DNA from: Macrostomum lignano
Taxonomy: Eukaryota
Assembly (NCBI GenBank): GCA_002269645.1
Contig: NIVC01001474.1
Coordinates: 62,001 to 126,000 of the forward strand
Direction: 5' to 3'
Length of the DNA stretch: 64,000 nt
A program made the translations under genes and the position numbers. The first letter of the stretch is position 1, and every line of letters starts with the position of its first letter. This document shows positions 1 to 56,019 of this stretch, piece after piece. The notes below the pieces were generated by a model. It was not told the DNA's origin, did no database searches, and saw only the letters and a program-made list of their open reading frames with translations.

Positions 1-769
1 CAGAGAGAGCTTAAGCGCTAGCCCTACTAAAACCACTCATTGCTTTGCAGTTGTGCCCATGCGCTCTCTTTGACTAGAAAATACACCCTGCCTTGAATAA
101 TATTCGGTGCTGTGAGCTTTGAGATGTGAGCCTCACTCATAATATGCCTTCAGAGGCCAAGTGTTTGTGAGAGTCTTTCTGACATGCAAGCAGAGAAGAC
201 AACAAGAAAATAAAACCTGTTACTGCCCATCTCTCGGGGGCTCTCGTTGTCCCAGCTTATTGTCAAATCTGTCCAATGAAGCAGTATTTCTTATATTACT
301 TGAGTGCTTGCACATTCGCTAGTTTTTTCATAATCATAAAATTTTCATAATAATATAATCATAAAATATTTCCTGATGGTTTGTTGCATTGGCAGGTGCC
401 ATCAATACCCAGCCCATCGAATTTCTAGTTTATTATAGTAACTCTAAGTAAGGTTTAGAATATCTCAAAAATGTAAAATTAAGCAAGACCCGATGCGCAG
501 ATGCAGTAATTCAAGATGCAGTCAGGTAAACCTGGTTGCCATGCAATTAAAGCATTAACATCTGAGCCGCCACAGGTGCCTGGCTCCCCTGCATTGGCGG
601 CAGAAGCTCAGCAGGTATGAAAAGCAATTGGCAAGAGCTGCAGAGGCTGAGCACTGCTCAGTGGCCTGCTATGGGCCTCTTCTGTCTATCTTTCTCTCTG
701 TGTGCGTTGGGGCACTGCGGCTCTTCCTCCCTTATCTACCACTCTGACGGCCATCTCCCTCATTTATCT

Positions 770-1860
770 ACCTCTTTGAATACCCCCTCTCCCTCCCTTA
801 TCTACCTCTTTGAATACCCCCTCTCCCTCCCTTATCTACCTCTTTGAATACCCCTCTCCCTCCCTTATCTACCTCTTTGAATACCCCCTCTCCCTCCCTT
901 ATCTACCTCTTTGAATACCCCTCTCCCTCCCTTATCTACCTCTTTGAATACCCCCTCTCCCTCCCTTATCTACCTCTTTGAATACCCCCTCTCCCTCCCT
1001 TATCTACCTCTTTGAATACCCCCTCCCTCCCTTATCTACCTCTTTGAATACCCCTCTCCCTCCCTTATCTACCTCTTTGAATACCCCCTCTCCCTCCCTA
1101 ATCCACCTCTTTGAATACCCCTCTCCCTCCCTTGTCTACCTCTTTGAATACCCCTCTCCCTCCCTTGTCTACCTCTTTGAATACCCCCTCTCCCTCCCTA
1201 ATCTACCTCTTTGAATACCCCTCTCCCTCATTTATCTACCTCTTTGACTCTCCCTCTCCCTCCCTAATCTACCTCTTTGAATACCCCTCTCCCTCCCTAA
1301 TCTACCTCTTTGAATACCCCTCTCCCTCCCTAATCTACCTCTTTGAATACCCCTCTCCCTCCCTTGTCTACCTCTTTGAATACCCCCTCTCCCTCTCTAA
1401 TCTACCTCTTTGAATACCCCTCTCCCTCATTTATCTACCTCTTTGAATACCCCCTCTCCCTCACTTATCTACCTCTTTGACTCTCCCTCTCCCTCACTTA
1501 TCTACCTCTTTGAATACCCCCTCTCCCTCCCTTGTCTACCTCTTTGAATACCCCCTCTCCCTCCCTAATCTACCTCTTTGAATACCCCTCTCCCTCATTT
1601 ATCTACCTCTTTGACTCTCCCTCTCCCTCCCTAATCTACCTCTTTGAATACCCCTCTCCCTCCCTTGTCTACCTCTTTGAATACCCCTCTCCCTCCCTAA
1701 TCTACCTCTTTGAATACCCCCTCTCCCTCCCTAATCTACCTCTTTGAATACCCCTCTCCCTCATTTATCTACCTCTTTGACTCTCCCTCTCCCTCATTTA
1801 TCTACCTCTCTGACTCTCCCTCTCCCTCCCTTATCTACCTCCCTGACTCTCCCTCTTCAT
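770..1860. repeat. Pyrimidine-rich minisatellite, 32-33 bp unit
   Basis: Unit CCCTCTCCCTCCCTTATCTACCTCTTTGAATAC repeated ~33 times with small variants; the ORFs over it are repeat artefacts. Confidence 0.95.
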
Positions 1861-3149
1861 CTCTTTATCTACTGGATCACCGTCCAGCTTTTTAAGTACA
1901 AAATACAAAACTGAACGAAAATGAATAAAGTAAACTTTTCTCTTAATTGAATCTCCATAGCTATTCTTAGCTAGTATTATTTTCTCAGACTGCATTTTCC
2001 TACCGCATAAGGCAGAAGCCCATGCTCGGATTAAACAAATATTTTATATTTTTTGCTAATTAAATGACTCTAGTGACTTTGCAAAATTTCAACTCGCATA
2101 GCGGTGAAAAAATATAATGAAAATATTTTAATTCACGTGAAATGACTGATCAATAAATGCCAATTGATGAAGCCAATATTAGAGTCACACTTTGGAGGCA
2201 GCTAATGCGCCTAGTCTGCTATTAGGCAATTAGTAGACTATAAGATAGTTAGACTATTAGGCTGAATTAGCAAAGTAATTATTGTGACCAAAAACTACCT
2301 CTATTAGTCAGTTTAACAGATCAGGCCAGCTAATAAATATGCAAATTATATTAGAGCAATTTATAACAAAATGCGTCATGGAAAAATGACAGAATTACGG
2401 CCTACTAATACAATTTTCATATCAAGCTACACAATTAAAATTGAAATAAAAAATCAGGAATTTTAGAGAACTTCAGCATATGCAATTTTACTCCACAGTA
2501 ATACAACGATTGAGTGGGTTATCAACGCCAAAATCACTCGGATTAGCAAGTAGATTATCACACCATAGTTTAGGTAAATTTGTATCAACTCCACAGCAGC
2601 CATTTAGTATAAATACTTACCAATATAATTACCAATACTTACCAATATAATTAGAATATATATTTAGAACAATTAGCTAGTTAGCAACTATATTAATGAA
2701 AGAGTCAACACAATTAGATATTGTAACCAAACAAATGCGATCGAAACACAAGAAATTAGACTAATTATTAATTATAAAATAAGCAATTCAGTCAAAATAA
2801 ATCAGTTAGACAATTAGGGAATTAGGCAATTTGAAAATTTGGAAATTGATATGCAGCTAGGCTTATCAGACAATTGGGCATTTAGATCGAATCAAATCGT
2901 AAAACAGTGCAGTGTGTACGCCATCAAGAATTTCAGTTCGTTAGCAGAAAGTGCATGCAAATTTGACAAATGAGAAAATTTGAAAACTAGCTACAGTTCT
3001 GAAAGAACCGCTCTGAAACTAAAATCAACACAAGTGAAAATCTAAGGAAGAAAATTATTTGCAACAGAATAAATATTGGCGGCACAAAGAAATAAAAGTA
3101 AAAATAGACGCTTTTTTCACTACATATCGGTAGATTGCCTCAGCTCAAT

Positions 3150-3830
3150 TGGAATGAAATGGGGTCTACCAGTTTTCCAGCAAGCCATTTGCCAGCCAGA
3201 TATTTGAGAGCCACTGCGGGACCTACCAAGAATGACTTCATCTGGAGTCAGCAGCATGATGAAGCGTTCCGAAAGATGACGAGGGAGCTGAGCAGTGCCC
3301 CTACGATGGCCTTTTATGATCAACCTCTCTTATTTACCTCGTATCTGCATGGCACACGGATGCTTCCAGACCCAATTATCTCCGCTCTAACCTGAAGCAG
3401 AAGCAGAGCGACTGCTCATGGCGAGTCGTCCAAGCCGGCTCAAGATTCGTTTTGGAGGCCGAGCGTCGTTGCGCAACGATCGAACTTGATCTGCTGGCTG
3501 TTGCTTGGACAGTGAAAGAGAAGTCGTCTTTTTCTCGAAAGATTGAAACAATTCGAAATAAGTAATCGATCACAGACCGCTGGGGCCGATCTCAAATAAG
3601 CACTCTTTGGACGAGATCGACAACCCAAGGTTGCAGCGACTGTCTCTGAAGCCCTACTAGAGCTTGCGTAAGAAGCTCAATGTTGAAGAACTAATACTGG
3701 TTGGAAAGAGATTATTGATACCGGGAGAGATGAGACGAGAGGTGCTCGAACACCTGCCAAGTATGCACCATGGAGCAGCAAAGATGAAAGAGAGCGAAAG
3801 ACACTATTTAAGCAGCCTCACAACTCAGAA
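3150..3830 (+). mobile_element. Degraded Ty3/gypsy pol relic (RT-RNase H connection and integrase Zn-binding start)
   Basis: Frameshifted peptides NDFIWSQQHDEAFRKMTRELSSAPTMAFYD, ATIELDLLAVAWTVK and LILVGKRLLIPGEMRREVLEHLPSMHHGAAKMKE are typical of gypsy pol. Confidence 0.8.
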
Positions 3831-4089
3831 GCAATGCACACACGCGAGAACAGCTCACAGTGCAAGTGCAGTGTCAGCTAAAGACAGTTTTTTTTTACAT
3901 CACCATAAAGCTAGGCCAAATTGCAATTGATAACACGATTTTTACAAAAATGTTCATTCCTTTTTACATCAGTCGTGTGGAGTCGATGACTCATCGAGAG
4001 GAGTACATGACCTGAAGCAATCGCACATACAAATTGCGGTTTATCTTCATGTAACAGTAGTTAGTCTCACATCATTTTCACTGCAATAC

Positions 4090-4705
4090 AGTCTGTCTGG
4101 CAATGTCTGTCTGGAAAATGTCTGGCTGGCAAATGTCTGGCTGGCAAATGTCTGGGTGGAAAATATCTGTCTGGAAAATGTCTGGCTGGCAAATATCGGA
4201 CTGGCAAATATCTGGCTGGCAAATTTCTGGCTGGAAAATGTCTGACTGGCAAATATCTGGCTGGCAAATGTCTGGCTGGCAAGTGTCTGGCTGGCAAATG
4301 TCTGGCTGGCAAATGTCTGGCTGGAAAATGTCTGGCTGGCAAATGTCTGGCTGGAAAATGTCTGGCTGGCAAATATCTAACTGGCAAATATCTGGCTGGC
4401 AAATATCTGGTTAGCAAGTATCTGGCTGGCAAATATCTGGCTGGAAAATGTCTGGCTGGCAAAATGTCTGGCTAGCAAATATCGGGCTGGCAAGTATCTG
4501 GCTGGCAAATATCGGGCTGGCAAGTATCTGGCTGGCAAATATCTGGCTGGCAAATATCTGGCTGGAAAATGTCTGGCTTGCAAATATCTGGCTGGAAAAT
4601 GTCTGGCTGGCAAATATCTGGCTGGCAAGTATCTGGCTGGCAAATATCGGGCTGGCAAATATCTGGCTGGCAAATATCTGGCTGGAAAATGTCTGGCTTG
4701 CAAAC
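4090..4705. repeat. 15-bp minisatellite (TCTGGCTGGCAAATA/G family)
   Basis: About 40 units; same family at 18315-18680 and 35975-36440. Confidence 0.95.
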
Positions 4706-4954
4706 CTAAATATCCCATAAGAATGGCTTCAGATTTGACATCAGAAGCAAGGGGGATGAACATGAATAGCATTTGAAGCGAGGACGTCACAACAGGCGTG
4801 CTGCATGAGCAGATCACTGAGTCACGCAGCTACTGGTAGAAAACAAACATTAATAAGCCATCAAGTTGCTCGATTACAAAGCTATCCAATGGTGCCAAAA
4901 AGCCATGAAAGCAGTCACCGACCGGTGCAACCGGAGTCGCATCTGGCACTCGGC

Positions 4955-7547
<2,593 letters not shown>

Positions 7548-8067
7548 GTTTCATGAGGAACTTATCGAAAACTCAATTCGTACCCCAGAGAGTGGCATGG
7601 AAATCTGCTCAAGCTTGACTGCTCAAAAGGCTCATGAGGAACATTCTAGATGGGAGGAGGGAAAACTGAGTACGAGAACCGCAACTGTGTTTGATCCCCT
7701 CAGACTCTCTGCCACTCAATCAGTGACAAACTCTGCAGAGTTAAAGGTTCAGTTCAGACTTCAGTTTTCCCGCTGCAGCCTCTGCAGCTGCAAGATCAGA
7801 GCTTCAGTGAGCAGCTCAGCTACTCGGCACTCAATTCAAATAAAATAAAATTCCCATAAGTAAGGTGTATTTGTGTTTCATCATCATCTAGCAACCGAGT
7901 GATCTGCAAATCCCGCCATTCAAAATGGATGCTTTACAAAACTCTGCCAGGTACCTTGATACAGACACCTGCTGCTTGGAATGGAAACCTAATTGATATA
8001 CATGAACACCAATTTTGAATTAAAGTAGTCACCAAGTTGAGTAACCAAGTTGCTCAGAAGCGCTCGC

Positions 8068-9579
8068 TCACCTGTGTGCAGCCTCTCGGACCGAATTCGG
8101 TCGCTCATCGCCCGTCAGCGCACGGTGCAGAATTTGGGCAGATCGCTCACTGCGGAACTCGATGGCACGGCTGAGAGCAGACTGAAGTGACTCTCGAGAT
8201 CCAGCCAAAGCGGAGGCTTTGAGAAGTGACTCAACCACGTGATGGTGGTCGTTTTGTGCCGCAATGTAGAGAGGTGACTCGCCAGTGTTTCGTTGAAGAT
8301 TGACGTCGGCTCGTGCTTTGAGGAGTCGATCGACTACCTCATGGTGGCCATTTTGTGATGCAATGTAGAGAGGTGACGAGCCAATGACCTTCTCTTGAAG
8401 ATTGACGTCGGCTCGTGCTTTGAGGAGTCGATCGACTACCTCATGGTGGCCATTTTGTGATGCAATGTAGAGAGGTGACGAGCCAGTGTTTCGTTGAAGA
8501 TTGACGTCGGCTCGTGCTTTGAGGAGTCGATCGACTACCTCATGGTGGCCATTTTTTGATGCAATGTAGAGAGGTGACGAGCCAGTGTTTCGTTGAAGAT
8601 TGACGTCGGCTCGTGCTTTGAGGAGTCGATCGACTACCTCATGGTGGCCATTTTGTGATGCAATGTAGAGAGGTGACGAGCCAGTGTTGAGTTGAAGATT
8701 GACGTCGGCTCGTGCTTTGAGGAGTCGATCGACTACCTCATGGTGGCCATTTTGTGATGCAGTGTAGAGAGGTGACTCGCCAGTGTTTCCTTGAAGATTG
8801 ACGTCGGCTCGTGCTTTGAGGAGTCGATCGACTACCTCATGGTGGCCATTTTGTGATGCAATGTAGAGAGGTGACGAGCCAGTGTTTCGTTGAAGATTGA
8901 CGTCGGCTCGTGCTTTGAGGAGTCGATCGACTACCTCATGGTGGCCATTTTGTGATGCAATGTAGAGAGGTGACTCGCCAGTGTTTCGTTGAAGATTGAC
9001 GTCGGCTCGTGCTTTGAGGAGTCGATCGACTACCTCATGGTGGCCATTTTGTGATGCAATGTAGAGAGGTGACGAGCCAATGACCTTCTCTTGAAGATTG
9101 ACGTCGGCTCGTGCTTTGAGGAGTCGATCGACTACCTCATGGTGGCCATTTTGTGATGCAATGTAGAGAGGTGAGCAGCCATCGACTACTTGAAGATTGA
9201 CGTCGGCTCGTGCTTGAATTAGTAAATCGACAGCCTCACGATGGCCTTGTTGACATCCAATATGCACTGCCGAGAATCCCTCACTGTTCTGTTTGTTGAC
9301 ATCAACACTCTCTCGAATCAGCCTCGCCAAGATGCCGATTCTGCTCAGGTAGCAAGCCCACATCAGCGGTGTACACTCACTTCCTCTCCAAGTCAGAATC
9401 GTGTCGACACTCCTCCCACTGGCAACGAAGTTCTCCACCGCCTGCAGGCGGTCCGCTTCAATCGCCTCAAAGAGCTCTTCATCTATGGGCTCGGCTGCGG
9501 CATCCCGGCTCGCCCTGCGGCCGAAAACCCGCAAGCAGCAGGCGGCCACCGCGCTGAAGAGTCGCTGCAGAAATCCCAT
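8068..9579 (-). CDS. Ankyrin-repeat coding exon, copy A (503-aa ORF; probably exon 1 of an ANK-cGLR fusion, 9579-8072)
   Basis: Nine near-identical 33/34-aa repeats SPLYIASQNGHHEVVDRLLKARADVNLQ plus capping repeats; the ORF ends in CACAG|GTGAGC, a consensus splice donor. Confidence 0.92.
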   Translation of the reverse strand: MGFLQRLFSAVAACCLRVFGRRASRDAAAEPIDEELFEAIEADRLQAVENFVASGRSVDTILTWRGSECTPLMWACYLSRIGILARLIRESVDVNKQNSEGFSAVHIGCQQGHREAVDLLIQARADVNLQVVDGCSPLYIASQNGHHEVVDRLLKARADVNLQEKVIGSSPLYIASQNGHHEVVDRLLKARADVNLQRNTGESPLYIASQNGHHEVVDRLLKARADVNLQRNTGSSPLYIASQNGHHEVVDRLLKARADVNLQGNTGESPLYTASQNGHHEVVDRLLKARADVNLQLNTGSSPLYIASQNGHHEVVDRLLKARADVNLQRNTGSSPLYIASKNGHHEVVDRLLKARADVNLQRNTGSSPLYIASQNGHHEVVDRLLKARADVNLQEKVIGSSPLYIASQNGHHEVVDRLLKARADVNLQRNTGESPLYIAAQNDHHHVVESLLKASALAGSRESLQSALSRAIEFRSERSAQILHRALTGDERPNSVREAAHR

Positions 9580-13265: not shown

Positions 13266-14654
13266 CTGGAGTTTGAGCTCTGCCCTGCCTGGTCCATCTT
13301 GCTCTGTCCTCGGTCCATCTGCTGGCTCCTCTGGTTGTCTCCCTGCCCTTGTGTCTCGGCTCTCATCCTGACAGTGGACTGGTGTCCTGGGGAATGAGTT
13401 CGTCCCGAATCGGGGATACCGGCTGAGTCCGGATCCTCTTGCTCCTTGTGCCCTTTTCCCGACCCCTTGGCCTACAATGTAAAGCTGGTAAGGTGACACT
13501 CTTGTGGCTCGCAGCCCTATAGGTCTTAGCAGTCAACCTGATAGGAGACTAGCCCTTGGAAACAAGCCTTCCAGCCAAACTCCACAGTTAAGTCATTTCC
13601 GTAGACTTCGGGGTTTCCCCGCTCTCGGACCGCTTTTCAGTAGTAACCTAAACATTTTCTAATTCTTTTTTCGCGCGCACACCCAAAGACTTGTCAGCTT
13701 GGGGGGGGGGGTCTGGGTGGACTCGGTCTTAGCACCGTCCCTGAATCCATTGTTGGGTTGGCGGTGTCTTAGTCCATAGGCTTGGGTTTAGGCAGTTCCA
13801 ATCTCCCCCTGGCCTACGACGTCAGGGACTAACCAACCTCGTGGGTATCTCGGGCTTTATGCCCCTGAAAGTGCCCCTCAGCGGCAGAGCCCCTCCCAGG
13901 GCTGATCCGCGGGTAGCTAGGCTTCCCTCCCCGTTTAAACAACAACTGACTCTGCTTTTTACTAATTTTGCCAATTGCTTCTGTCAGGAATTGCCTAGTT
14001 GAGTTCATTTCTGTGCCCGAACCGTTCGGCTGCTGAAAAATCAATTATTTTTATCCTCAGACCACCGAGGCAGGGTTCTCCTCCTGCATTTCCTGAGCTC
14101 TCCCAGTGAATGCAAGACTTGCAAAATGCTGACTTGGTGGCAATTGAAGCTGAATGGACTCTGGGCAGCTCAGTGACTGCTTCTTACTGTATGAGTTGCA
14201 TTGGCGGTTTCACAGCTGATCGATAAGTTGGGGAGGGGCTGCTATTGTAGCATTGAGCAGTTCTCAATTGTGAGTTCGATCTGGGAGTTGGGGGCTGCGA
14301 GCGCTCGGGTCTCTGCTGAGCTGCTGGCTCTGTGAGTTTCCCAGTTGTGCTCAAGCAGGACTCTGACAGGCATTGTAGTTTATTTTACAGATCTGTCATG
14401 AGGGCTTGTGGCAATGAGTTTTATAACCCCCCAAACTGGCATTGTGCAGCGTCATGTGAGGCTTATAGCCAGGCATCTTACATGCTGAAGTCCCGTGAGT
14501 TTCACACTATAGGAATAAATATTCATTATAACAAATAAATGGCCGATTTCTGTCTGAGGTTTGCAGGAAAAACCCCTAGGAGCCATGAGTGAATAAAATT
14601 GAGCAATTAATCACCCAATTAATTGTGCTTAAAGAGCTGCTTCTGAGTTTATCT

Positions 14655-15087
14655 TGCACGGCTCTTATTTGCACATGTATTTGCACGGCTCTTATTTGCA
14701 CATGTATTTGCACGGCTCTTATTTGCACATGTATTTGCACGGCTCTTATGTGCACATGTATTTGCACGGCTCTTATGTGCACATGTATTTGCACGGCTCT
14801 TATTTGCACATGTATTTGCACGGCTCTTATGTGCACATATATTTGCACGGCTCTTATTTGCACATGTATTTGCACGGCTCTTATGTGCACATATATTTGC
14901 ACGGCTCTTATTTGCACATGTATTTGCACGGCTCTTATGTGCACATATATTTGCACGGCTCTTATTTGCACATGTATTTGCACGGCTCTTATGTGCACAT
15001 ATATTTGCACGGCTCTTATTTGCACATGTATTTGCACGGCTCTTATTTGCACATGTATTTGCACGGCTCTTATTTGCACATGTATTT
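14655..15087. repeat. 27-bp minisatellite
   Basis: TTGCACGGCTCTTATTTGCACATGTAT x ~16. Confidence 0.95.
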
Positions 15088-15399
15088 AAAGCCAATGAAT
15101 CATGCACAGTAAATGTGTGACAGACAGCCATTCTCAAGTCAAAAAAGACTCAAATAATTTGCAATGCGCCAACTGCCTGTGCCAGACTGCCGTCTTGTTG
15201 CTCACCGCACTGGCGGCTGCGGCTCGCTGAGCGTTTCTAAGAAACGGCTGAGGCAGCGCGACTGAATTTTGCTAATTTGGAAATCAGCGTGAACTGCCCT
15301 CACCGACTCCGGGCTGCAGCCAGTTTGAGGATCAGCTCTTGCCGCTTCGCTTGGCATTGCTGAGTTCACGATCCCAATTATCCCATTCTTCAGTTCAGG

Positions 15400-16150
15400 A
15401 TCCTCAAATATCCCATTTTTCAGTTCACGATCCCCAAATATCACCTATTCAGTTCACTATCCCAATTATCCCATTCTTCAGTTCAGGATCCTTAAATATA
15501 ACCTATTCAGTTCACGATCCCCAAATATCCCATTCTTCAGTTCAGGATCCCCAAATATCACATTCTTCAGTTCAAGATCCCCAAATATCCCATTCTTCAG
15601 TTCAGGATCCCCAAATATCACATTCTTCAGTTCAATATCCCCAAATATCCCATTCTTCAGTTCAGAATCCCCAAATGTCACATTCTTCAGTTCAGGATCC
15701 CCAAATATCACATTCTTCAGTTCACGATCCCCAAATATCCCATTCTTCAGTTCACGATCCCCAAATATCACATTCTTCAGTTCAAGATCCCCAAATATCC
15801 CATTCTTCAGTTCAGGATCCCCAAATGTCACATTCTTCAGTTCAGGATCCCCAAATATCACATTCTTCAGTTCAAGATCCCCAAATATCCCATTCTTCAG
15901 TTCAGGATCCCCAAATATCCCATTCTTCAGTTCAGGATCCCCAAATATCACATTCTTCAGTTCAAGATCCCCAAATATCCCATTCTTCAGTTCACGATCC
16001 CCAAATATCACATTCTTCAGTTCAAGATCCCCAAATATCCCATTCTTCAGTTCAGGATCCCCAAATATCACATTCTTCAGTTCAGGATCCCCAAATATCC
16101 CATTCTTCAGTTCAGGATCCCCAAATATCACATTCTTTAGTTCACGATCC
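15400..16150. repeat. 30-bp minisatellite
   Basis: GTTCAGGATCCCCAAATATCCCATTCTTCA x ~24. Confidence 0.95.
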
Positions 16151-16186
16151 CCTACTGACAGATCCTCTACTGACAGATCCACACTG

Positions 16187-18048
<1,862 letters not shown>

Positions 18049-18314
18049 GCCGAGTGCCAGATGCGACTCCGGTTGCACCGGTCGGTGACTGCTTTCATGG
18101 CTTTTTGGCACCATTGGATAGCTTTGTAATCGAGCAACTTGATGGCTTATTAATGTTTGTTTTCTACCAGTAGCTGCGTGACTCAGTGATCTGCTCATGC
18201 AGCACGCTCAAACCCTCCGTTTTTTCTGCTGTGACGTCCTCGCTTCAAATGTTATTCATGTGCACCCCTTGCTTCTGATGTCAAATCTGAAGCCATTTTT
18301 TGGGATATCTAGGT

Positions 18315-18680
18315 TTGCCAGCCAGACGTTTTCCAGCCAGACATTTTCCAGCCGGACATTTGCCAGCCAGACATTTTCCAGCCAGACATTTTACAGCCAG
18401 ACATTTTCCAGCCAGATATTTGCCAGCGAGACATTTGCCAGCCAGAAATTTGCCAGCCAGACATTTTCCAGCCAGATATTTGCCAGCCAGACATTTTCCA
18501 GCCAGACATTTGCCAGCCAGACATTTGCCAGCCAGACATTTGCCAGCCAGACATTTTCCACCCAGACATTTGCCAGCCAGACATTGCCAGACAGACATTT
18601 GCCAGACAGACATTTGCCAGCCAGACATTTGCCAGCCAGACATTTTCCAGACAGACATTTGCCAGACAGACATTGCCAGA
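18315..18680. repeat. 15-bp minisatellite (CCAGCCAGACATTTG family)
   Basis: Inverted paralog of 4090-4705, ~24 units. Confidence 0.95.
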
Positions 18681-21010: not shown

Positions 21011-21562
21011 TCAAGTTGGAGTACTGGAGGGACCCGGTAGATCAGGTATTTCTTGAATATCTCCTCCGTTATTGTCAGCAGCATCAAGAAGACGAACACT
21101 TTCGATGTAGGTCGTATTATCTTGCCTCAATTCCAACTTTGCCAGGTGTCTTCTGATCTCGTCCAAGCAGCCGACACTGTGGAATCTGTACAATATTGAG
21201 TACGGCAAGCTATATAGGATCTGTGCTCCACGTGGAAGGAATGAGGTCCAATCCTTGATAGGATCTCTGTCGAAAATCATTACGAAGCTGGAAAAAGTGA
21301 ACATCAGCCACTCTGACAAGTTGATCAGCATCATGGCGACAGAACACTGCTTTAACCAGTAAATATTTGAATTGTCATGGATTGTCCAGTCGAACGCCAG
21401 AGTCAGTGCTAATACTTCAAATTGCAAGAAGGTGTCAATTATACCAAATGGCAGGTCTACCAGAGCCACAACAAATGGAGCGGAGTTATTGGCGGGTGCA
21501 CCATTGAAATTAACTTGCGTGGGATCGATAATGCTCTGAACGTTGTATACCAATAAAAAAGA
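21011..21562 (-). pseudogene. Otopetrin-like copy B, 3' fragment (last three TMs)
   Basis: LKQCSVAMMLINLSEW...YRFHSVGCLDEIRRHL; 5' part replaced by unrelated sequence. Confidence 0.85.
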
Positions 21563-36860: not shown

Positions 36861-36861
36861 G

Positions 36862-38700: not shown

Positions 38701-38729
38701 AAGTAACATATCTACTTAAGTAGTCCTTG

Positions 38730-41300: not shown

Positions 41301-41589
41301 GACTGAGCTGCGGACTCAGTGGGACTCCGTGGGACTCTTTGGGACCGAGCTGGGGACTTAGTGGGACTCCTTCAGCTCTGCCTCCCCTCCAGGATGTTTC
41401 TATCATTGCATCAAAAGCTGTCACAGCTGCGAGGTGAGCAGGTGGGAATTGGCCTCAGCACAGAGGAGCAGCGGATACAATGCTGGGGGATAAAAATCGG
41501 CAGAATAAGATGGGCACAATAAAGATCGAACTGAAGCATCAATTGGAATAAACTCGGGTCTACTCCCAGTTATCCGCCAGCCATTTGCC

Positions 41590-42450
41590 AGCCAGGCATT
41601 TGAGAGCCACTGCGGGACCTACTGAAGGCCAAGAATTACTTCATCTGGATTCAGCAGCATGATGAAGCGTTCCGGGAGATGACAAGGGAGCTGAGCAGTG
41701 TCCCTAAGATGACCTTTTATGATCAACTTCTTATCTACCTCTCTTATCTGCATTGCACTCGGATGCTTCCAGACCAAGCTGTCTGGACCGCTTTACCCTG
41801 AAGCAGAACCAGAGCGAGTGTCCAAGCCGGCTCAAGATTCGTTTTGGAGGCCGAGCGTCGTTAAGCAACGATCGAGCTTCAACTGCTGTCCGTTTCTTAG
41901 ACAGTGAAAGAGAAGTCGTCTTTTTCTCGAAAGATTGAAACACTTCGAAATAGTAGTCGAACACAGACCGCTGGAGCCGATCTCAAATAAGCACTCTTAG
42001 GACGAGATCGACAACCCAAGGTTGCAGCGACTGTCCTGAAGCCCTACTAGAGCTTGCGTAAGAAGCTCAATGTTGAAGAACTAATACTGGTTGGAAAGAG
42101 ATTATTGATACCGGGAGAGATGAGACGAGAGGTGCTCGAACACCTGCCAAGTATGCCCCATGGCAACGCCATTGAGAATGTAGCAAAGCACTGAGTAATA
42201 TGCCAGGAGAATTCCTTCCGAATGAGCAAAGGAATCATCTTTAGGCCAGATCGACAATCCAAGGTTACAACTACTGTCTCTGAGGCCATTATCTGAGGCC
42301 ACGTTGAGAAGTTAGCAAAGCACTGTGTAAGATGCCAGGAGGACCTTCCAAGTCAGCATAAAAAGCCAATGCAAAGGAGAGAAGAACCTGATAGAGTGTT
42401 CCAGCAGCTACGCATTGATCTGCACGAATTTTGAAGGAAAATTTTCTGGT
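41590..42450 (+). mobile_element. Ty3/gypsy pol relic (paralog)
   Basis: Same PLRDLLKAKN..W and LILVGKRLLIPGEMRREVLEHL segments as 3150-3830 and 38730-39100. Confidence 0.8.
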
Positions 42451-43139: not shown

Positions 43140-45507
<2,368 letters not shown>

Positions 45508-45825
45508 TTTATACCCCAGAGAGTGGCATGGAAAATCTGATCAAGCTTGAATTCTCAAAAGGCTCATGAAGGACATCCTACGCGCCAGATTTTTGTATTT
45601 CATCATCATCTAGCAGCCGAGTGATCTTCAAATCTCACCGTTCGAAATGGCGACTTCAAAATGCCAGGTACCTGAAGGTCCATACAGACACCTGACTAAT
45701 GGATATGCAGGGACACTAGATTGATTAAAATGCTGGTCACAAGTATAAAGAACCAAGTTTCACCGACCACAAAACCTGCAGCAGTATTTCACACCCCTAT
45801 AACAAGCAGCAACTCAGCAGCGCTC

Positions 45826-46863
45826 ACCTGTCTGCAGTTTCTGCGGCCGAATTCGGTCGCTCATCGCCCGTCAGCGCACGGTGCAGAACTTGCGCAGATC
45901 GCTCACTGCCGAACTCGATGGCACGATTGAGAGCGGATTGAAGTGACTCTCGAGAGCCTTCGAGAGCGGAGGCATTGAGAAGCGACTCAACCACCTGATG
46001 GTGGTCGTTTTGAGCGGCAGTGTAGAGTGGTGACTCGCCAGTGATGAGTCGAACATTGACGTCAGCTCGTGCTCTGAGGAGCCTATCTACGAGTAGTACC
46101 TCATTGTGGCCATTTGTGATGCAATGTAGAGAGGTGACGAGCCAGTGATGAGTCGATGATTGACGTCGGCTCCTGCTTTGAGGAGTCGATCGACAACCTC
46201 ATGGTGGCCTTGCGCTGATGCAACGTAGAGAGGTGACTCGCCAGTGTTTCGTTGAAGACTGACGTCGGCTCGCGCTATGAGGAGTCGATCTACTACCTCA
46301 TGGTGGCCATTTTGTGATGCAAAGTAGAGAGGTGACTGGCCACTGTTTCGTTGAAGATTGACGTTGGCTCCTGCTCTGAGGTGTAGATCCACTATCTCAT
46401 GTTGGCCTCGCGCTGATGCAATGTAGAGAGGTGACTCGCCATTGTTTCGTGGAAGATTGACGTCGGCTTGTGCCTTGAGGAGTCTATCTACAACATCATA
46501 GTGGCCTTGCATTGATGCAATGTAGAGAGGTGACTCATCTTTGACCTTCTCTTGAAGATTGACGTCGGCTCGTGCTTGGATTAGTAAATCGACAGCCTCA
46601 CTATGGCCCAGTAGACATGCAAAAAACAATGGCGAGTATTCACCCCTGTTCTGTTTGTTAACATCGACGCTCTCTCGAATCAGCCTCACTAAGATGAAGA
46701 TTCTGCTCAATAAACATACCCACATCAGCGGTGTCAACTCATTTTCTCTCCAAGTGAGAATCATGTCGACACTCCTCCCACTGGCAATGAAGTTCTCCAC
46801 GGCTTGCAAATCGTCTGCTTCAATCGCCTGAAAGAGCTCTTCATCTGGGTCATTCCGGCGCAT
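45826..46863 (-). pseudogene. Ankyrin exon copy C (five internal repeats), one frameshift
   Basis: ATG at 46863 (MRRNDPDEELFQ); 1-bp loss in an A-run at ~46113 (may be a sequencing error); ends GCAGACAG|GTGAGC at 45828/45827. Confidence 0.8.
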
Positions 46864-47657
46864 TGCTCTAATGAAGCCAAAAAGCAATGAGTGCTAAAGA
46901 AAGTACTTTCGATACTTGGAAAGAATAAACGATATAAGCAAAACAAACAATAAACGATATTTCTCCAAGTGCATTCAGAGCGAGCTGCTGTCATTTTAAC
47001 CCCAGCGCTGAAGGCTTTTGCTGCTGAGAGCCAATCAACTTTTCCCGCTTCTCAACCTCATTCGGAAACTGCTGCCCAGTGCTGGTCAGTAGTATCCGTG
47101 GGAGCGAGCTGCTAAAATTAGAAACTGCTGGGGTAAATTCAACCGCCTGCAGCTGGAAGAGATGCGGCTACTGCGATTTGCACCTGAAAGCCCAGTCTTT
47201 CATGAGATCAAATGAATGAAGTCAGTCAAAGAGAGTTTCGAGTCTAAATCCACGCAAAGCACAGCAGACCTTTGCAGAGGGAAAAAAGTACTTTCATTGT
47301 CAGGGGAAATTACTCAGAAGACATTTGCCAAAATTATGGTGTAGTGATCAGAGGCGCCATAAAGGTGCCACACAAAGACATCGTGGCATTTCCGTCATCT
47401 CCGAACCAAGTGACCAGGGTTTCTAATGGGTTTGTATAGAATAAAACACCGCTATGGCTCTACCCGAATGTTACTCATGTGAACTTTTTATAAAATGCCG
47501 CTCACAATATTTGGGCAAAATGGCAGCAGGAGGTCTCCAAGAGGCCCGCACTGAGGCCTTCGGTTCTGCTTGTGAAGAACTTCTTTCAAATAATTTTTAT
47601 TACGGCAGTAAATAGACGTCTTCTACTGCTTGTTTGCATCTCAAAGCCAGGACTACT

Positions 47658-49800: not shown

Positions 49801-51791
49801 GGTTCTGTCTACATAACACACTTCGGATATGTTACTAGGTCATATGTCAGTGTTACAGATCTTACTTTGAGCAGATATTCTACATCAATCAGGTCTGAGT
49901 CTCTGCATCATTTATAAAGTTTATCAAGAATAAGCTGAGCCAGACATACAAGCTTGTACTTGTACATTTGATCTCTCGCTGGCCCAGCCTTATTGTCCGC
50001 AGGACCAACTCTGCCCAGGCAAGAATAACAAATTATTTTCTCTTTCCTCATCATGTTGCAGCCCCGCACCGTCCAAACACGAGATGGAGGATTGGCAGGA
50101 GTTGATGACGCACCCAGTCTCAGGCTTGGGGCATTGCTGTAGCAATTATTGAATGGGCAAAAAGTTTTTAGAGCTTTTTGAGTGTCGACAGCCCCACATT
50201 AACAATGGAAGCTGCAATTCAACAGCAAGAGCAACTAAAACCCAGCATTACTGAGCAGCACAGAGCCGCAGAGGCCACTCATACGCAGCTCTGAGCTGTT
50301 TCGGTTCGCTGATTTTGTTGAATTGAAGTTGTCTCTGAGCGGGAGCTCGAAGCCACTGGAAAAGTGCTCAACACCGGAGCGGAAAAAACAATAGCCTTCT
50401 ACTTGTCTCGACCCCAGCTATCCAAACAGCCGACCTCATAGAATAACGAAGCTGGAGTTTTAGGCTAAGGCTGTGAGTTTTGAGATGTAAGCCAGCAGTG
50501 TGTTTTAAGAGTCTTTCTGACACGCAAGCAAAAGATAACGAGAAAATAAAACCGGTTACTCGCTCATCTCTCAAGGCCTGTCATTGTCCCAGATTATTGT
50601 GAATTCTGTCCTATGAAGCAGCATTTCTTATCTGTCCAGAGTGTTTGCACAGTCGTTTGTTTTTTGCACTTAATCAAAAAATATTGCTTGCTGGTTTGCT
50701 GCATTTGGTAGGTGCTATTAATATTATGTAGGCAATCGAAGTTCAGTGTCGGCAAATCACTAATGACCAAATCACCATTACGGTTTATAGTTTCTTTTTT
50801 TCATTTTTCAATTATTTTTCAATTTTATTTTTCAAAAATTATACTTTGTATCTATCTTTACTAACTAAAGTAAAAAGAGTGTTATTAGCACTTAGGAAAT
50901 TCGATTTTGTTAAAATGTGTACTCGGCAGTCACATTACATAAAAGTAAAAGTTACAGCATTACAGGTCCCTGTTTGATCATTCTGTTGCAGTCATGCAGA
51001 CATTTTGGAAACAAATTGGTATTTTCATGACAGCAGGCCTTTACTGCTCTGGAGTATTGTTTGGTAAACTTCAGTCTACAATGCAGCTTAAATCTGCAGG
51101 AAGAGAAAGGGAATTCACTGAATGCTTCCAGTTAACGGCAAGCAGTCTTAATGGTTTGTGTTTCAAACTGGACACCTAATTAAGAAATTCAAATACATTT
51201 GATGATTTCCGACTGTTTGTATAGTTCGTTCTTGGTCTGATTGGAGTCAGTTATTAACGAGTTCGACTATGATTTTTCTGACTATGATCAGACCATAATG
51301 ATGTTAAAACAAGCGAATACAAGGTGGTAAGCAAACTGTGGACAGAGTACGAAGCAGTTAAAGGGTCATGGTATAGTTATCGATAATTTGAGTCGTCTGT
51401 CGTCAAAGGCTAATGCCTGCGGTAGTCTGAGAGTTGAGTCTAAGGTTTGGTCAATTGCAATGCTAGAGAGTAGGAAGAGGGCCGGTCTGAAGACTGCTTC
51501 TTACTTCGTTTGTTAAAAATACAGCGCGATGTTAGTCTGCTATTGGTAGCCTGCGTTGAGCAAATCATCTCAGATGGATAGGACGGCATTGATGGAGTTC
51601 GCACAAAAACGCACACAATGGAAATGGCTATACATTTTTAAAAGGCAGAGTTGCCAAGTACATGTACCTTATTATAAGGCTGTTATTTTACGAGTAATAA
51701 TTTATCTTGGGCTTCGTTTAAGCTTAAAGAATAAGAAAATTTTTGAACGATAGCCTGAGCTACCACGACGCAATCTGCACCAGCTTCGGTC

Positions 51792-53657
51792 ATGGCAAGC
51801 GATACAATACTCCTGTTTGAAACAGCGACTAGCAAAAGAGGTTACTATGGAAGCAATTCGACTCAAGCTGGAACTCGTACAGGTAATTCGAATGAAGCTG
51901 GAGGTGCAGAAGTTAATTCGAATGAAGCTGGAGGTGCAGAAGTTAATTCGACTGAAATTGAAATTCATCCAGCATTTTCCATGAAGTTCTGCAACTTGCT
52001 GCCAATCGAATACACTGTGATCTTGTCGATTTTGAGTTTAGCTTTAACCTTAAATGACAGCCAACTGCAGAGAGGTAACGAGAAGTGCGCTGACTTCAAG
52101 CCTTTGCCGTCGAAAATTTGTAGTTCAACCTTATTGTTTTGTGCTGTGTTCTCGCTCATTGGGTTGCTTTTGTATGCTTATTGTAGCAAAAAGAAGCTTG
52201 TCAATGCCAAAGTGTCAGATAAAGATGGCAAAAAACGGTCGTTTAAAAAAGTCTCAGCCTGGATTCCTGTGCTGGAAAAGCACGCTTCCGTGCCTTCTAC
52301 ATTCCTGCTGATCGCCTGCTTTTTGCTAGGCCTGGTCTTCGCTATTGGAAACGCCTTAAAATCTATTGACGGTATTTTCCAGCTCACAAGCGATGAAAAC
52401 GATAGTAACCACTGCTCGGATCCAAATTTCTGGTGGCACTTTGACAAGTTTGTGATTCCATGCCTAAAAGTCGCGTTTACAATACTCCAAACCCTATTCT
52501 TTGCATTTCATGGCAACCAAAGTCCGAATACGAGCCGTGGTTTCTCAATTTTATTCTCCTTTCTAATGGCCCATTTAATCGCCACCAACTTGTCGTCTTG
52601 GTTCTCAAGAGTTAACTCTGAAGTTCTGGAACAGCTCAATAATCATAATCATTCAGAAAGCAACAATTCTGGTATAAGCAAATTTCTGCCCTATATTTTT
52701 CCATTCAGCGCTGAATATTCCCCTCTCTGCGCCATTTTCGCCCTGTTCTGGTGGATCAACATCGGGCATTTGGCTAAACTGTTGCGCGAGCATCCTGCTG
52801 TGAAAAATGAAGAAGATCTGCAGAATTTGCTGAAAGAAAGCTCGCACGATCTGGCTCTTTGTCGGACCTTCTTGAAACTTCTTGGCCTGATCCTACTGAC
52901 AGCTTTTACCATATTTTCCTCCATATTTTTTTTCTTGAATCTTAACCGAATGTATCAATATACGATATTCTACTTCGTTATGATGTGCCTCCACTTTGTC
53001 AATGCAATCGCTTTGATTTGTTTCTTTCGGTTTGGCCGTCAAAATCAGAACTCCACTGGTCAGCAGTTTCACAGACGCTACGGAGTCGACGTTGCTCTGT
53101 TGTGGATAGCTGCAGTATTTGACACAGCTAACAATACATTTTTACTTGCATACAACTTTTACAACATTATCGATCCCTCGCGAGTTCAGTTCGATGGTAA
53201 AGCCGCCAAAAACTCCGTTCCATTTGCTGTGGCTTTCGTAGACCTGATAATTGGTATAGTGGACACCTGGTTGCAAGTAAAAGTATTGACTCTGGCGTTC
53301 AACTGGACATTCCGCGCCAATTCAACAACGATCGATAGGTTAAAACAGTGCTCTTGCGTAATAATGGCGATAAACTTAATAGAGTGGTTGATGTTCACTA
53401 TTCGCAGCTCCCAAATGATTGTCGACACAGAATCTCTCAAGATTGGGATCCCATCGATAACGCTAATTGTGTCAATCATTTGCTTGCCGCTCTCGATATT
53501 TTACAGATTCCACAGTGTCGGCTGCTTAGAAGAGATCAGAGGACACCTGGAAAAAGTAGAATTGACGCCAGATAATACGATCTACATCGAAATGGTTCCA
53601 CTGCGGCCTGCTGAGACCAGGCCTGCTGAGACACCGCCTGCTGAGACCGCCTGCTGA
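51792..53657 (+). CDS. Otopetrin-family proton channel, copy D, intronless, 621 aa
   Basis: HLIATNLSSW, PYIFPFSAEYS, AINLIEW, IFYRFHSVGCLEEI; ~12 hydrophobic segments; clear paralog of 32982-35114. Confidence 0.88.
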   Translation: MASDTILLFETATSKRGYYGSNSTQAGTRTGNSNEAGGAEVNSNEAGGAEVNSTEIEIHPAFSMKFCNLLPIEYTVILSILSLALTLNDSQLQRGNEKCADFKPLPSKICSSTLLFCAVFSLIGLLLYAYCSKKKLVNAKVSDKDGKKRSFKKVSAWIPVLEKHASVPSTFLLIACFLLGLVFAIGNALKSIDGIFQLTSDENDSNHCSDPNFWWHFDKFVIPCLKVAFTILQTLFFAFHGNQSPNTSRGFSILFSFLMAHLIATNLSSWFSRVNSEVLEQLNNHNHSESNNSGISKFLPYIFPFSAEYSPLCAIFALFWWINIGHLAKLLREHPAVKNEEDLQNLLKESSHDLALCRTFLKLLGLILLTAFTIFSSIFFFLNLNRMYQYTIFYFVMMCLHFVNAIALICFFRFGRQNQNSTGQQFHRRYGVDVALLWIAAVFDTANNTFLLAYNFYNIIDPSRVQFDGKAAKNSVPFAVAFVDLIIGIVDTWLQVKVLTLAFNWTFRANSTTIDRLKQCSCVIMAINLIEWLMFTIRSSQMIVDTESLKIGIPSITLIVSIICLPLSIFYRFHSVGCLEEIRGHLEKVELTPDNTIYIEMVPLRPAETRPAETPPAETAC

Positions 53658-54037
53658 GACACCGCCTGCTGAGACACCCCCTGCTGAGACACTGCCTGCT
53701 GAGACGCCTGCTGAGACCAGCCTGCTGAGGCACTGCCTGCTGAGACGCCTGCTGAGACACCGCCTGCTGAGACACCCCCTGCTGAGACACTGCCTGCTGA
53801 GACGCCTGCTGAGGCACTTCCTGCTGAGACGCCTGCTGAGACCAGCCTGCTGAGGCACTGCCTGCTGAGACGCCTGCTGAGACACCGCCTGCTGAGACAC
53901 CCCCTGCTGAGACACTGCCTGCTGAGACGCCTGCTGAGGCACTTCCTGCTGAGACGCCTGCTGAGACCAGCCTGCTGAGGCACTGCCTGCTGAGACGCCT
54001 GCTGAGACCCGCCTGCTGAGGCACTGCCTGCTGAGAC
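53605..54037. repeat. Complex GCCTGCTGAGAC minisatellite spanning the otopetrin-D stop codon
   Basis: 12-15 bp variants of CCTGCTGAGAC/GCAC; first units encode PAET. Confidence 0.9.
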
Positions 54038-54077
54038 ATTTATCGACTTACATACATAGGTATGTAAGTCGATAAAT
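54038..54077. other. Perfect 18-bp-stem hairpin
   Basis: ATTTATCGACTTACATAC-ATAG-GTATGTAAGTCGATAAAT. Confidence 0.9.
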
Positions 54078-54609
54078 CAATAAGTAGGCAGCTGTGCGCA
54101 GGCAACTGTCGTGCTACCATTAACTTTGCTACGATATTATTTTAAATGGGATTTTTTTATAATTTCTCAACTGTATCGAACACTTTTGTCCTGAAATTTC
54201 GTTACACTTTGACTTTTTTGTTCGACACCTCTTCTATTTGTGCTTATTTCAAATTTGACTATACATGTATATACTCGTATATACATTTGAGGCTTGCCAT
54301 GATACATTAAAATGTGGTAATCAAAAATAATTTTATTCATTATTGTCAATTGATCTGTGACCCAATTACCGTATGCGCCTTGCGTCAAATCGAATAGTTA
54401 AGTAATTAAAATAAACCTTACCTTCATTTTCACTTCGGACTCTGCGCTGTCTATGGCACATTCACTCGCTTGCACTGGGGCAGCCCCCAAAGCGTTTGCA
54501 CTATTGTGTAATTTTGCAAGCTAAAGTAAGTTAAAAACCCTGAATTAAAATCCTGGATAATTCTGGCCGCGCTGGCCAGAACAAAGGAACAAGGTTGAAA
54601 CGGCCATAA

Positions 54610-55671
54610 ATGGCGAGAGTGCTGCAGAACGTCGACCTGAAAGACCTGGCCAACCGGTTGCTCACATTTGACACTGAGGATGTTGAGAATCACGTGCCGC
54701 TCACTGCGGCTGAGTGCCTGTCAGTGTGCCACATGGCCATGGAGGCAATGAGATCCACAGACATCTGCATCCACATCAAGACGCCAATCAACATTGTGGG
54801 CGACTTGCACGGCCAGTTCCACGATCTGCTTCGAATATTCGACGCTCTTGGCCAGCCGCCCGAGTCACGCTTTCTGTTCCTCGGCGACTACATCGACCGA
54901 GGCAAGTACTCGCTCGAGGTGATGACGCTGCTGTTTGTGCTGATGCTGCTGTACCCGAACTCGGTGTACCTGCTGCGAGGCAACCACGAGACGGCCAACA
55001 TCTGCTGCAGGTACGGATTCAAAGACGAAATCGGCCAACGAATGGTGCGAATTCAGGCGCACAAAGTGCTTGGCGGATTCGTCAGGACCTTCCAGTGGAT
55101 GCCGATGTGCGCAATCATTGATGGCCAGATCTTCTGCTGTCACGGTGGCATCTCGCCAAACTTCATGCTGCAACCATTTAACCTTCGAGGCGGGCAGCAG
55201 GCCAATGTCCAGGCGTTGAACGAGTGCAAGAAGCCGGTGGAACCGGTCAGGCCCGGCATCCTGTGCGACATCATGTGGTCGGACCCAATTGGCACCGCGT
55301 TCAGCGCCCAGTTCAGCCAGAGCAGCGAGACTCTGACTGAGGCCAAGTGGCTGCCAAACAAGCGTGGCTGTTCGTTCTCATTCTCTGGCCAAGCTCTAGA
55401 AGAGGTGATGCGGCTGTTCCAGACTCAGATGCTGATCAGAGGCCATCAGGTGGCTATGAACGGCTATCAGTCACAGTTGAACAGACGCTGCGTCACCGTG
55501 TTCAGCGCGCCTGGCTACTGCGGCGTCTACAACAATATCAGCAGCATACTGCAGATCGAGCGGCTGAACGATGATAGCAAATCCCCTGGCAGTTTTTTCC
55601 TGCTGCGACCGATGCAAAGAGACCCGTCTGCGCTGGCAAACCTGTTCTGGAACGAGCTGCGCGACATCTAA
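54610..55671 (+). CDS. PPP-family Ser/Thr phosphatase, divergent PP1-like, intronless, 353 aa
   Basis: All catalytic motifs present: GDLHG, GDYIDRG, GNHE, HGG, WSDP, RGHQ, plus SAPGYCG (PP1 SAPNYC loop). Confidence 0.93.
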   Translation: MARVLQNVDLKDLANRLLTFDTEDVENHVPLTAAECLSVCHMAMEAMRSTDICIHIKTPINIVGDLHGQFHDLLRIFDALGQPPESRFLFLGDYIDRGKYSLEVMTLLFVLMLLYPNSVYLLRGNHETANICCRYGFKDEIGQRMVRIQAHKVLGGFVRTFQWMPMCAIIDGQIFCCHGGISPNFMLQPFNLRGGQQANVQALNECKKPVEPVRPGILCDIMWSDPIGTAFSAQFSQSSETLTEAKWLPNKRGCSFSFSGQALEEVMRLFQTQMLIRGHQVAMNGYQSQLNRRCVTVFSAPGYCGVYNNISSILQIERLNDDSKSPGSFFLLRPMQRDPSALANLFWNELRDI

Positions 55672-56019
55672 GAGCGACGACTCCATTTGACACGGTGAAG
55701 GAAAGTTCGGCAGCTCACCTCTGCACAGACGATAGAAAGTTATTTATTTTTTTACTAACGAAAGTTCATTTGTTTGTACTCACTTGGTGAAATAAAACTG
55801 CCTTTTTCCTAAAAATAATAAACTGCAGAATAGACTGTCGGCATTTTTTTTGCATCGCTGGGAGTTAAATGGTCTTGAAGGCGTTTGACACGAGGCTGTA
55901 GGTTGTAAAATACCGAAATATGCGAATAATATACCGTGTGATTTACATTGTAAGACGGCAACGGTTAGAACACGTTGCTTTTAATCTGCCCTTCTTGTGA
56001 TGACACTTCCAGCTGATAC

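Follow-up and report, generated by a model that had tools for sequence, protein, structure and literature searches.

Bacterial CBASS loci consist of a CD-NTase gene and an effector gene, the latter often encoding a transmembrane protein. NLR, KIR and olfactory-receptor genes, whose families evolve fast or serve immunity, form tandem arrays that change by birth and death. A locus with likenesses to both lies on contig NIVC01001474.1 of the flatworm Macrostomum lignano (positions 62001-126000; assembly GCA_002269645.1). This stretch of 64,000 nucleotides, hereafter the window, contains copies of otopetrin genes (OTOP), PP1-like phosphatase genes (PPP) and genes that fuse ankyrin repeats to a cGAS-like receptor of the Mab21 type (ANK-cGLR), distributed over four blocks (I-IV) among transposon relics and minisatellites. 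The initial annotation described them as a co-duplicated cassette encoding a linked signalling module, with passive hitch-hiking in a segmental duplication as its fallback. The evidence reviewed here favours the fallback: the genes probably became neighbours by passive hitch-hiking in a transposon-reshaped birth-and-death array, and a working module is not supported.

M. lignano is described as a recent hidden tetraploid (PMC5704211; PMC10733133), and its genome as a difficult target for assembly (PMC10733133). According to Li et al. 2023, most flatworms are without cGLRs, and some cGLRs, including certain coral ones, carry ankyrin repeats (PMC9980059). Three M. lignano proteins of the ankyrin-Mab21 family (PAA86972.1, PAA45980.1 and PAA57558.1) are nevertheless in the list of their cGLR screen, for which M. 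lignano paralogues were cloned; the main text gives no result for them (PMC9980059). Nothing specific came out of literature searches that paired Macrostomum with cGLR or cGAS.

Ages, linkage and junctions of the blocks

Self-BLAST of the window reveals homologies between blocks of 76-97% identity over 0.2-1.9 kb, well above chance, and these include every one named in the initial annotation. The components within these blocks differ widely in divergence. Synonymous divergence (Nei-Gojobori dS) spreads three- to nine-fold within the same block pairs, at 0.34-0.50 for OTOP (II-IV, 0.34; II-III, 0.48; III-IV, 0.50), 0.05-0.15 for cGLR (II-III, 0.053; I-II, 0.088; I-III, 0.148) and 0.10 for PPP. 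Between blocks II and III, the OTOP value stands against the far lower cGLR value at p = 2e-9 (Fisher test for contrasts within a block pair), and between blocks II and IV the OTOP value stands against a PPP dS of 0.098 at p = 1.5e-4. One duplication of the whole cassette therefore does not explain the data, and the components cannot be called co-duplicated. Selection alone was rejected as the reason for the low PPP divergence between blocks II and IV, since it has no means of reducing divergence at synonymous sites; the value calls for gene conversion or a more recent duplication. Two histories are possible, both of them neutral mechanisms: an old OTOP(-PPP) array was later invaded by a segment carrying the cGLR and the relic, or an old array of whole units had its cGLR/relic and PPP parts later homogenized by gene conversion.

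The broken cGLR copies add a second line of evidence. Copies II and III carry an identical 2-bp deletion (ATGCT[TG]AGAGC; at 17053 and 44153, respectively) and share a neighbouring G-to-C change relative to intact copy I. This shared frameshift indicates that an already dead copy was itself duplicated, and the equality of dN and dS between the two (both 0.053; dN/dS 1.0) points to neutral drift since that duplication. Copy II has at least two frameshifts, including the shared one, and its 5' end is cut by a reverse-transcriptase fragment of a 5'-truncated long interspersed nuclear element (LINE; 16250 to ~16825, minus strand); exon 3 of copy III has three frameshifting indels (44153, 43406 and 43163), and its ankyrin exon is 85% identical to 8065-8839. 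A fourth copy, missing from the initial annotation, retains the ankyrin and upstream regions (81-97% identity to 10727-8065 and 78-85% to 47820-45810) and is followed by a LINE, with no Mab21 exons in their place. An insertion that split a single gene into cGLR II and this ankyrin-only copy was considered and rejected: the two stand in the wrong order on the plus strand, and their affinities differ, the shared frameshift linking exon 3 of copy II to copy III and an identity of 96.8% linking the ankyrin relic to copy I.

Linkage of the three gene types was surveyed in M. lignano by anchoring on ankyrin-Mab21 and PPP-paralogue loci and searching 10 kb to either side for the partners with tblastn. 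No OTOP or PPP was found within this distance of six other ankyrin-Mab21 genes (L003-L008), which are 34-60% identical and lie on different contigs. Likewise, no OTOP or Mab21 was found within 10 kb at nine loci of four PPP paralogues, comprising a third local PPP copy with its two sister loci and three distant paralogues at six loci. The sole other co-occurrence of OTOP and ANK-cGLR is on contig NIVC01001606.1 (10761-50205; L002), which is 91-99.5% identical in patches to window positions 722-23469 and is thus either an allele or a homeologue from the genome duplication; the patchiness of this identity suggests gene conversion between the copies. This sister contig is without window positions 21005-17885 (3.1 kb containing PPP II, the relic, the array and the end of cGLR II), the flanks of the deletion overlapping by 5 bp at the junction. 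It also carries cGLR I as a tandem pair and a full-length OTOP II with no PPP after it. These differences indicate that gene content is turning over between near-identical copies of the locus. As the ankyrin-Mab21 family forms more than 80 clusters scattered over the genome, the presence of one member beside an otopetrin array is unremarkable.

The block order OTOP-PPP-relic-cGLR-ANK read by the initial annotation reflects real homologies, yet all four elements stand in order in block II only. PPP occurs in just two blocks, and its junction in block II is a sharp breakpoint, falling inside PPP codon 242/243 and inside the RNase H piece of the relic, which in blocks I and III goes on for another 320 bp or more. 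In no other block does PPP meet the relic and cGLR, and the junction cuts both elements. In block III, the 3' flank of OTOP passes straight into the array and relic with no trace of PPP; beyond the PPP of block IV come a 36-bp satellite and AT-rich DNA, and cGLR is absent over 8 kb; in block I, tblastn found no OTOP or PPP in 1-4900. The spacer match annotated between 100-400 and 50470-50720 was recovered (Table 1). The head-to-head arrangement of ANK-cGLR and OTOP also exists, though it involves pseudogene copy III across a 4.9-kb gap. The window holds one intact cGLR (I), two intact OTOPs (III and IV) and one intact PPP (IV), at least one intact copy per gene type, which agrees with the birth-and-death pattern originally noted. 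The intact cGLR is never in the same block as an intact OTOP or PPP.

Table 1. Positions, strands and states of genes, relics and repeats in the window.
Feature	Position	Strand	State and evidence
ANK-cGLR I	9579-4955	-	Only intact ankyrin-Mab21 gene; coding sequence 1103 aa, three exons
cGLR II	16820-18045	+	Pseudogene fragment, exon 3 codons ~87-494; tblastn in three frames
cGLR III	43163-45501	-	Mab21 exon 2 and exon 3 pseudogene
ANK III	45821-46887	-	Copy III ankyrin exon; open reading frame breaks after 266 codons; Pfam Ank
Ankyrin-only relic	25307-27830	+	Fourth ANK-cGLR copy with upstream region; self-BLAST, tblastn ANK match
OTOP II	21562-21068 (feature span 21011..21562)	-	C-terminal fragment, about 165-180 codons; tblastn
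OTOP III	32982-35114	+	Intact single-exon open reading frame, 710 aa; Pfam Otopetrin PF03189 3.9e-20
OTOP IV	51792-53657	+	Intact single-exon open reading frame, 621 aa; Pfam Otopetrin PF03189 2.2e-18
PPP II	20048-19323	-	Codons 1-242 only; C-terminal third of catalytic domain gone
PPP IV	54610-55671	+	Intact, 353 aa; Pfam Metallophos 3.5e-30, 106 bits
Spacer fragment, block I	161-342	+	82% to 50500-50682, ~1.2 kb upstream of OTOP IV
33-bp satellite, block I	721-1841		TRF; stands where OTOP and PPP would be
LTR-retrotransposon pol relic, block I	3108-3927	+	Reverse-transcriptase connection/RNase H and integrase zinc-finger pieces; RT_RNaseH_2 7e-10
15-mer minisatellite, block I	4092-4704	+	TRF period 15; relic and array just 3' of cGLR I
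15-mer array, block II	18314-18685	-	TRF; inverted relative to block I
Truncated LTR relic, block II	18764-19316	-	Abrupt end at PPP II junction
15-mer array, block III	35976-36443	+	TRF
LTR body relic, block III	36560-37015 (RNase H), 39119-39911 (integrase)	+	RT_RNaseH 9e-8; rve 2.7e-5
Nested LINE reverse-transcriptase fragment in block III relic	38238-38711	-	RVT_1 5.8e-5, below Pfam cut-off
Second relic piece, block III	41535-42163	+	Abuts cGLR III; self-BLAST
LINE-type fragment	27907-30448	+	RNase H, endonuclease-like open reading frame, reverse-transcriptase N-terminus; RVT_1 5.5e-12

The genes and their families

Pfam (with curated cut-offs), structure matches and tblastn bear out the otopetrin, PP1-like, ANK-cGLR and long terminal repeat (LTR) relic identities, and their places, as initially assigned. 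The ankyrin and cGLR parts had been located correctly but as separate genes; canonical GT-AG splice junctions in copy I (AG/GTGAGC...CAG/A and G/GTGAGA...CAG/CA) restore the frame and make the ankyrin and Mab21 open reading frames (ORFs) exons of one gene. In this copy, exon 1 (9579-8072) encodes ankyrin repeats, exon 2 (7485-7139) the N-lobe of the nucleotidyltransferase with its GS and DxD motifs, and exon 3 occupies 6411-4955. The exact proteins of the intact cGLR, OTOPs and PPP are absent from the protein database, where cGLR I is present as a shortened 871-aa model (NCBI model P0001; 98% identical). Exon 1 includes ten 99-bp (33-aa) ankyrin units arranged head to tail (8216-9215; 93% identity). 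P0001 leaves out most of these and their number differs in the sister contig, which makes the repeat count variable. Intron 2 of copies I (6559-7126) and III (44856-45081) is filled by a (GACA)n microsatellite that yields long spurious 'CLSV' ORFs.

Fold, motif, family profile and the listing by Li et al. together make the ANK-cGLR label sound, and place the gene in an already catalogued family. The AlphaFold2 model of the Mab21 part (pLDDT 87.6, pTM 0.88) indicates a bilobed nucleotidyltransferase fold of the Mab21/cGAS type. When it was compared with the PDB using Foldseek, the top 50 matches were all cGAS, MAB21L1 or the coral Sp-cGLR1 (probability 1.00, E from 2e-6, target TM-score 0.46-0.59, 360-418 aligned columns); matches to ankyrin and DARPin proteins dominate when the full-length 871-aa model is used. 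The catalytic motif residues, in P0001 numbering GS 323-324, D345-I-D347 and D404, map to beta-1, to beta-2 and to a subsequent strand in the model, and are conserved in 24-25 (GS), 23 (DxD) and 22 (third D) of 27 paralogues; motif and strand position suggest their equivalence to cGAS E225/D227/D319. Copy I scores below the Pfam cut-off for Mab-21_C (16.5 bits; cut-off 24.1), which the paralogue P0010 exceeds. Against solved structures, the family profile matches cGAS only.

This profile recovers 594 proteins from a library of 1.84 billion, and all ten of the weak-tier matches scanned carry Pfam Mab-21 and Mab-21_C above cut-off. At 50% identity and E <= 1e-30, 82 representatives remain, giving the more than 80 divergent clusters mentioned above, and PAA57558.1 from the list of Li et al. 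falls in a recovered cluster. All 20 strong matches looked up belong to M. lignano, the first outside match sampled being a mussel cGAS, and by these profile matches the ankyrin-Mab21 family appears to be a large M. lignano-specific expansion. For one M. lignano member (PAA59752.1; P0198) the source record gives the name 'Caspase family p20 domain-containing'; this protein may be a cGLR-caspase fusion that would fit an immune or cell-death role of the family.

OTOP III and IV belong by domain to the otopetrin family (72.6 and 66.8 bits for PF03189; cut-off 27.8) and are predicted proton channels; their matches among solved structures are to OTOP2 and OTOP3 only. The OTOP II fragment is 56-58% identical to both (tblastn). 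Its 5' 2.3 kb is deleted in the window contig and is present and open in the sister contig, which has a 641-codon open frame at the matching site. Both intact ORFs run into minisatellites at their 3' ends (34669-35102 and 53606-54038). In OTOP III the 3' end merges into a 21-bp minisatellite (TRF 34669-35102) with a predicted (HHDAAVS)n tail of ~140 residues. A search of the protein database with OTOP IV returned no match, the query itself included. A further otopetrin relic lies left of the window (L001 23100-23403, equivalent to window positions -3.5 to -3.8 kb) and at the equivalent place in the sister contig (L002 38169-38529), so the OTOP array extends past the window. The dN/dS ratio is raised (0.5-0.7) for the OTOPs and cGLR I.

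PPP IV shares the strand of OTOP IV and follows it after 950 bp. Its ORF reads GDLHG, GDYIDRG, RGNHE and HGG, and its best match among solved structures is PP1-alpha (1e-60, 208.8 bits), followed by PP2A (1e-48, 169 bits). It differs from canonical PP1 in its 35-40% identity and ~30 extra residues. The Pfam scan of PPP IV returned Metallophos only, without STPPase_N (PF16891); this domain, which typifies canonical PP1 and PP2A, is also unlisted for the M. lignano clade P0040-P0049 (PF00149 only), and most canonical PP1 matches list it. In the absence of this N-terminal domain, PPP IV is best named PP1-like. PPP II is without the region past codon 242, and thus part of its catalytic core is missing. 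Over the shared region, the two copies are identical in amino acids and 97.9% identical in nucleotides, all 15 differences being synonymous (dN = 0), which indicates that PPP II was under purifying selection until shortly before its truncation. Between PPP IV and the third copy (V), just outside the window, dS is 0.59 and dN/dS 0.19. By these ratios, PPP is the sole component under strong purifying selection. The third copy (P0040; L010 10001-11062) is intact, 353 aa long and 83% identical to PPP IV; it corresponds to window-equivalent 69.0-70.1 kb on the minus strand, ~5 kb past the right end and ~15 kb right of PPP IV.

Transposon relics and satellites

The relic called gypsy by the initial annotation is an LTR-retrotransposon pol relic, with a LINE reverse-transcriptase fragment nested inside its block III copy; by superfamily, the element may be gypsy or BEL/Pao. 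RT_RNaseH is above cut-off at ~3.3-3.6 kb and 36.6-37.0 kb, and the rve match at ~39.1-39.4 kb is below it (24.8 bits; cut-off 32.6). RNase H precedes integrase at 36.6-39.9 kb, and no LTR pair was identified. The relic and array of block I are homologous to 19316-18314 (92%, from 3465-4463) and 41535-42163 (88%).

The segment from 16.8 to 27.8 kb has the opposite orientation to the other units. Inverted LINE fragments flank it, which include a reverse-transcriptase C-terminus (16250-16825) and a pair at 14325-14728 and 28875-28467 (88% identity). This arrangement suggests LINE insertions, or LINE-LINE recombination, as the cause of the inversion and of the truncation of two cGLR copies. The RNase_H match of the LINE-type fragment at 27907-30448 is below cut-off (2.7e-4, 21.6 bits; cut-off 25.8). 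LINE-like ORFs at 16247-16972 and 28785-29759 have no Pfam match, and neighbouring fragments did match. TRF identified 22 minisatellite arrays scoring at least 200 in the window. The longest ORFs in 55965-57462, 23054-23863 and 15339-16317 (up to 493 aa) lie wholly in minisatellites, on both strands, and are not genes. Rfam matches SNORD24, a C/D-box snoRNA, at 58671-58744 (minus strand; 42.3 bits, gathering score 41) in the AT-rich 57.5-64 kb, where no gene was called; the match, just over the threshold, is either marginal or a possible sign of an unannotated host gene.

Explanations for the linkage and known systems

The preferred explanation is passive hitch-hiking within a lineage-specific tandem array of neopolyploid M. 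lignano that transposons and satellites have shaped and that evolves by birth and death. The homologies, gene states, divergences, shared frameshift and lack of linkage at the other loci are direct observations; the sequence of events and what the proteins do are inferred. The oldest layer would be a tandem series of divergent otopetrins, some followed by a PP1-like gene. Interleaved with it would be copies of a ~7.5-kb segment comprising an ankyrin-Mab21 gene, the LTR relic and the 15-mer array, which spread later or were homogenized. Unequal crossing-over or gene conversion, LINE insertions, an ~11-kb inversion and deletions would then have destroyed most copies. The genes would be neighbours because a duplicating segment copies whatever it contains, and each survivor would act on its own: cGLR I would belong to the more than 100 cGAS-like sensors or nucleotidyltransferases of M. 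lignano, its ankyrins probably binding a ligand or partner, OTOP III and IV would be proton channels, and PPP IV would be a divergent PP1-type phosphatase. Nothing in the locus goes beyond known kinds of genome dynamics.

Several observations weigh against this explanation. The linkage survey started from the Mab21 and PPP sides only, and the window still has intact copies of the three gene types inside a span of 50 kb. The all-synonymous pattern between PPP II and IV has p = 2e-10 under neutrality. At 78-82% identity, the spacer pieces fall between OTOP and cGLR, and this leaves room for an old whole-unit duplication followed by gene conversion. The order spacer-OTOP-PPP-relic-cGLR-ANK is also readable across five units, provided that each is allowed its own losses.

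A functional module would have the ankyrin-cGLR sense a ligand and make a cyclic nucleotide that gates or regulates the neighbouring otopetrins, with the PP1-like protein as switch or modulator, selection holding the three genes together by analogy with CBASS, and an ancestral 15-kb unit (spacer-OTOP-PPP-relic-cGLR-ANK) amplified as a working cassette before its decay. Recurrence of the three gene types in neighbouring blocks speaks for it, as do the conserved GS...DxD...D motif and cGAS fold of the cGLR and the sister contig with its OTOP beside ANK-cGLR. A non-STING effector is also conceivable, as cGLRs are missing from most flatworms and the cestode entries of Table S5 in Li et al. give zero STING genes (PMC9980059). 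The survey argues the other way, with partners at none of the six ankyrin-Mab21 and none of the nine PPP loci. Within the window, the genes lie on opposite strands, kilobases apart, with satellites and transposons between them; the block of intact cGLR I is without an intact OTOP or PPP, and 23 kb separate this gene from the nearest intact OTOP; and the head-to-head pair involves pseudogene copy III and a 4.9-kb gap. The discordant divergences, the copying of a dead cGLR and the loss of PPP II from the sister contig are likewise hard to reconcile with a module. Otopetrins are not known to have a nucleotide-sensing domain. A signalling module, whether as the amplified cassette or in its smaller version of a co-transcribed OTOP and PPP pair, is accordingly judged very improbable. 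A co-transcribed or co-regulated OTOP-PPP unit to which cGLR is a bystander is a related proposal. These two genes lie on the same strand, ~0.95 kb apart, and are colinear with their intergenic region in blocks II and IV (21559-21100, 20724-20569 and 20094-19324 matching 53139-53592, 54119-54272 and 54564-55334), a colinearity that is old and gives a two-gene unit some plausibility; the strong purifying selection on PPP also speaks for one. Nonetheless, OTOP III and the OTOP II of the sister contig have no PPP after them, the third local PPP and the three distant paralogues have no OTOP within 10 kb, and PPP dS is far under OTOP dS for the same block pair. Such a unit is therefore considered unlikely.

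Mis-joins between subgenome copies of this repeat-rich neopolyploid genome could have made part of the mosaic, given near-identical sister contigs with different structures, satellites at many junctions and the described difficulty of assembling this genome (PMC10733133). However, copies in the window are 76-97% identical and have their own indels, as collapsed or duplicated reads would not, and, three clean structural differences aside, the order from 23.5 to 0.7 kb finds independent confirmation in the sister contig; an assembly artefact is thus unlikely as well. The initial annotation also raised a selfish toxin-antidote locus, in which a gene product harms offspring or gametes without the linked antidote and so drives the cassette. 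The general picture of rapid duplication, decay and structural polymorphism in tight linkage would suit one. No component resembles known toxin-antidote proteins, a pair that is complete and intact exists in no block, members of these families are found unlinked at other loci and the spreading duplicates include dead copies, which leaves this idea with next to no plausibility. Passive hitch-hiking thus stands as the favoured explanation. Recurring gene order inside a segmental duplication should not be taken as evidence of functional coupling. For annotation of the locus, the useful result is the tally of intact genes given above.

Compared with known systems, the likeness to CBASS operons is superficial, consisting of a cGAS-type nucleotidyltransferase gene near a membrane-protein gene. 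A functional cassette would have made the locus the eukaryotic counterpart of cyclase-effector defence operons, but the evidence speaks against this. There is no operon in this eukaryotic locus: the cGLR copies are on the opposite strand to the OTOP and PPP of their blocks and 1-20 kb away, with transposon relics and satellites between them, so that adjacency and co-orientation are both lacking. Nor does the pairing recur at the independent M. lignano loci surveyed, being seen again only in the near-identical sister contig. With other animal cGLRs, among which are ankyrin- or TPR-fused forms, the ANK-cGLRs share the Mab21/cGAS fold, the conserved GS, DxD and third D, and an N-terminal ankyrin fusion, as in some coral cGLRs. 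They differ in the very divergent sequence of cGLR I, which falls below the Mab-21_C cut-off, in an extra C-terminal helical region of ~200 aa without a match, and in their massive expansion in one species, though most flatworms are reported to be without cGLRs. PPP IV resembles the Drosophila PpY and PP1-like genes, which are among its database matches, in its Metallophos core with GDxHG, GDxxDRG and GNHE, its best structure match to PP1, its lack of introns and its lineage-specific expansion.

A further likeness is to the birth-and-death arrays of NLR, KIR and olfactory-receptor genes. Shared features are segmental duplications of mixed age, copies that are mostly pseudogenes, transposons and satellites at breakpoints, differences in content between haplotypes or homeologues, and a raised dN/dS of 0.5-0.7. 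The locus differs from these arrays in that three unrelated families are interleaved and in the strong purifying selection on PPP. It thus provides a well-resolved example of birth and death, in which a species-restricted cGLR family is set among fast-diverging otopetrins.

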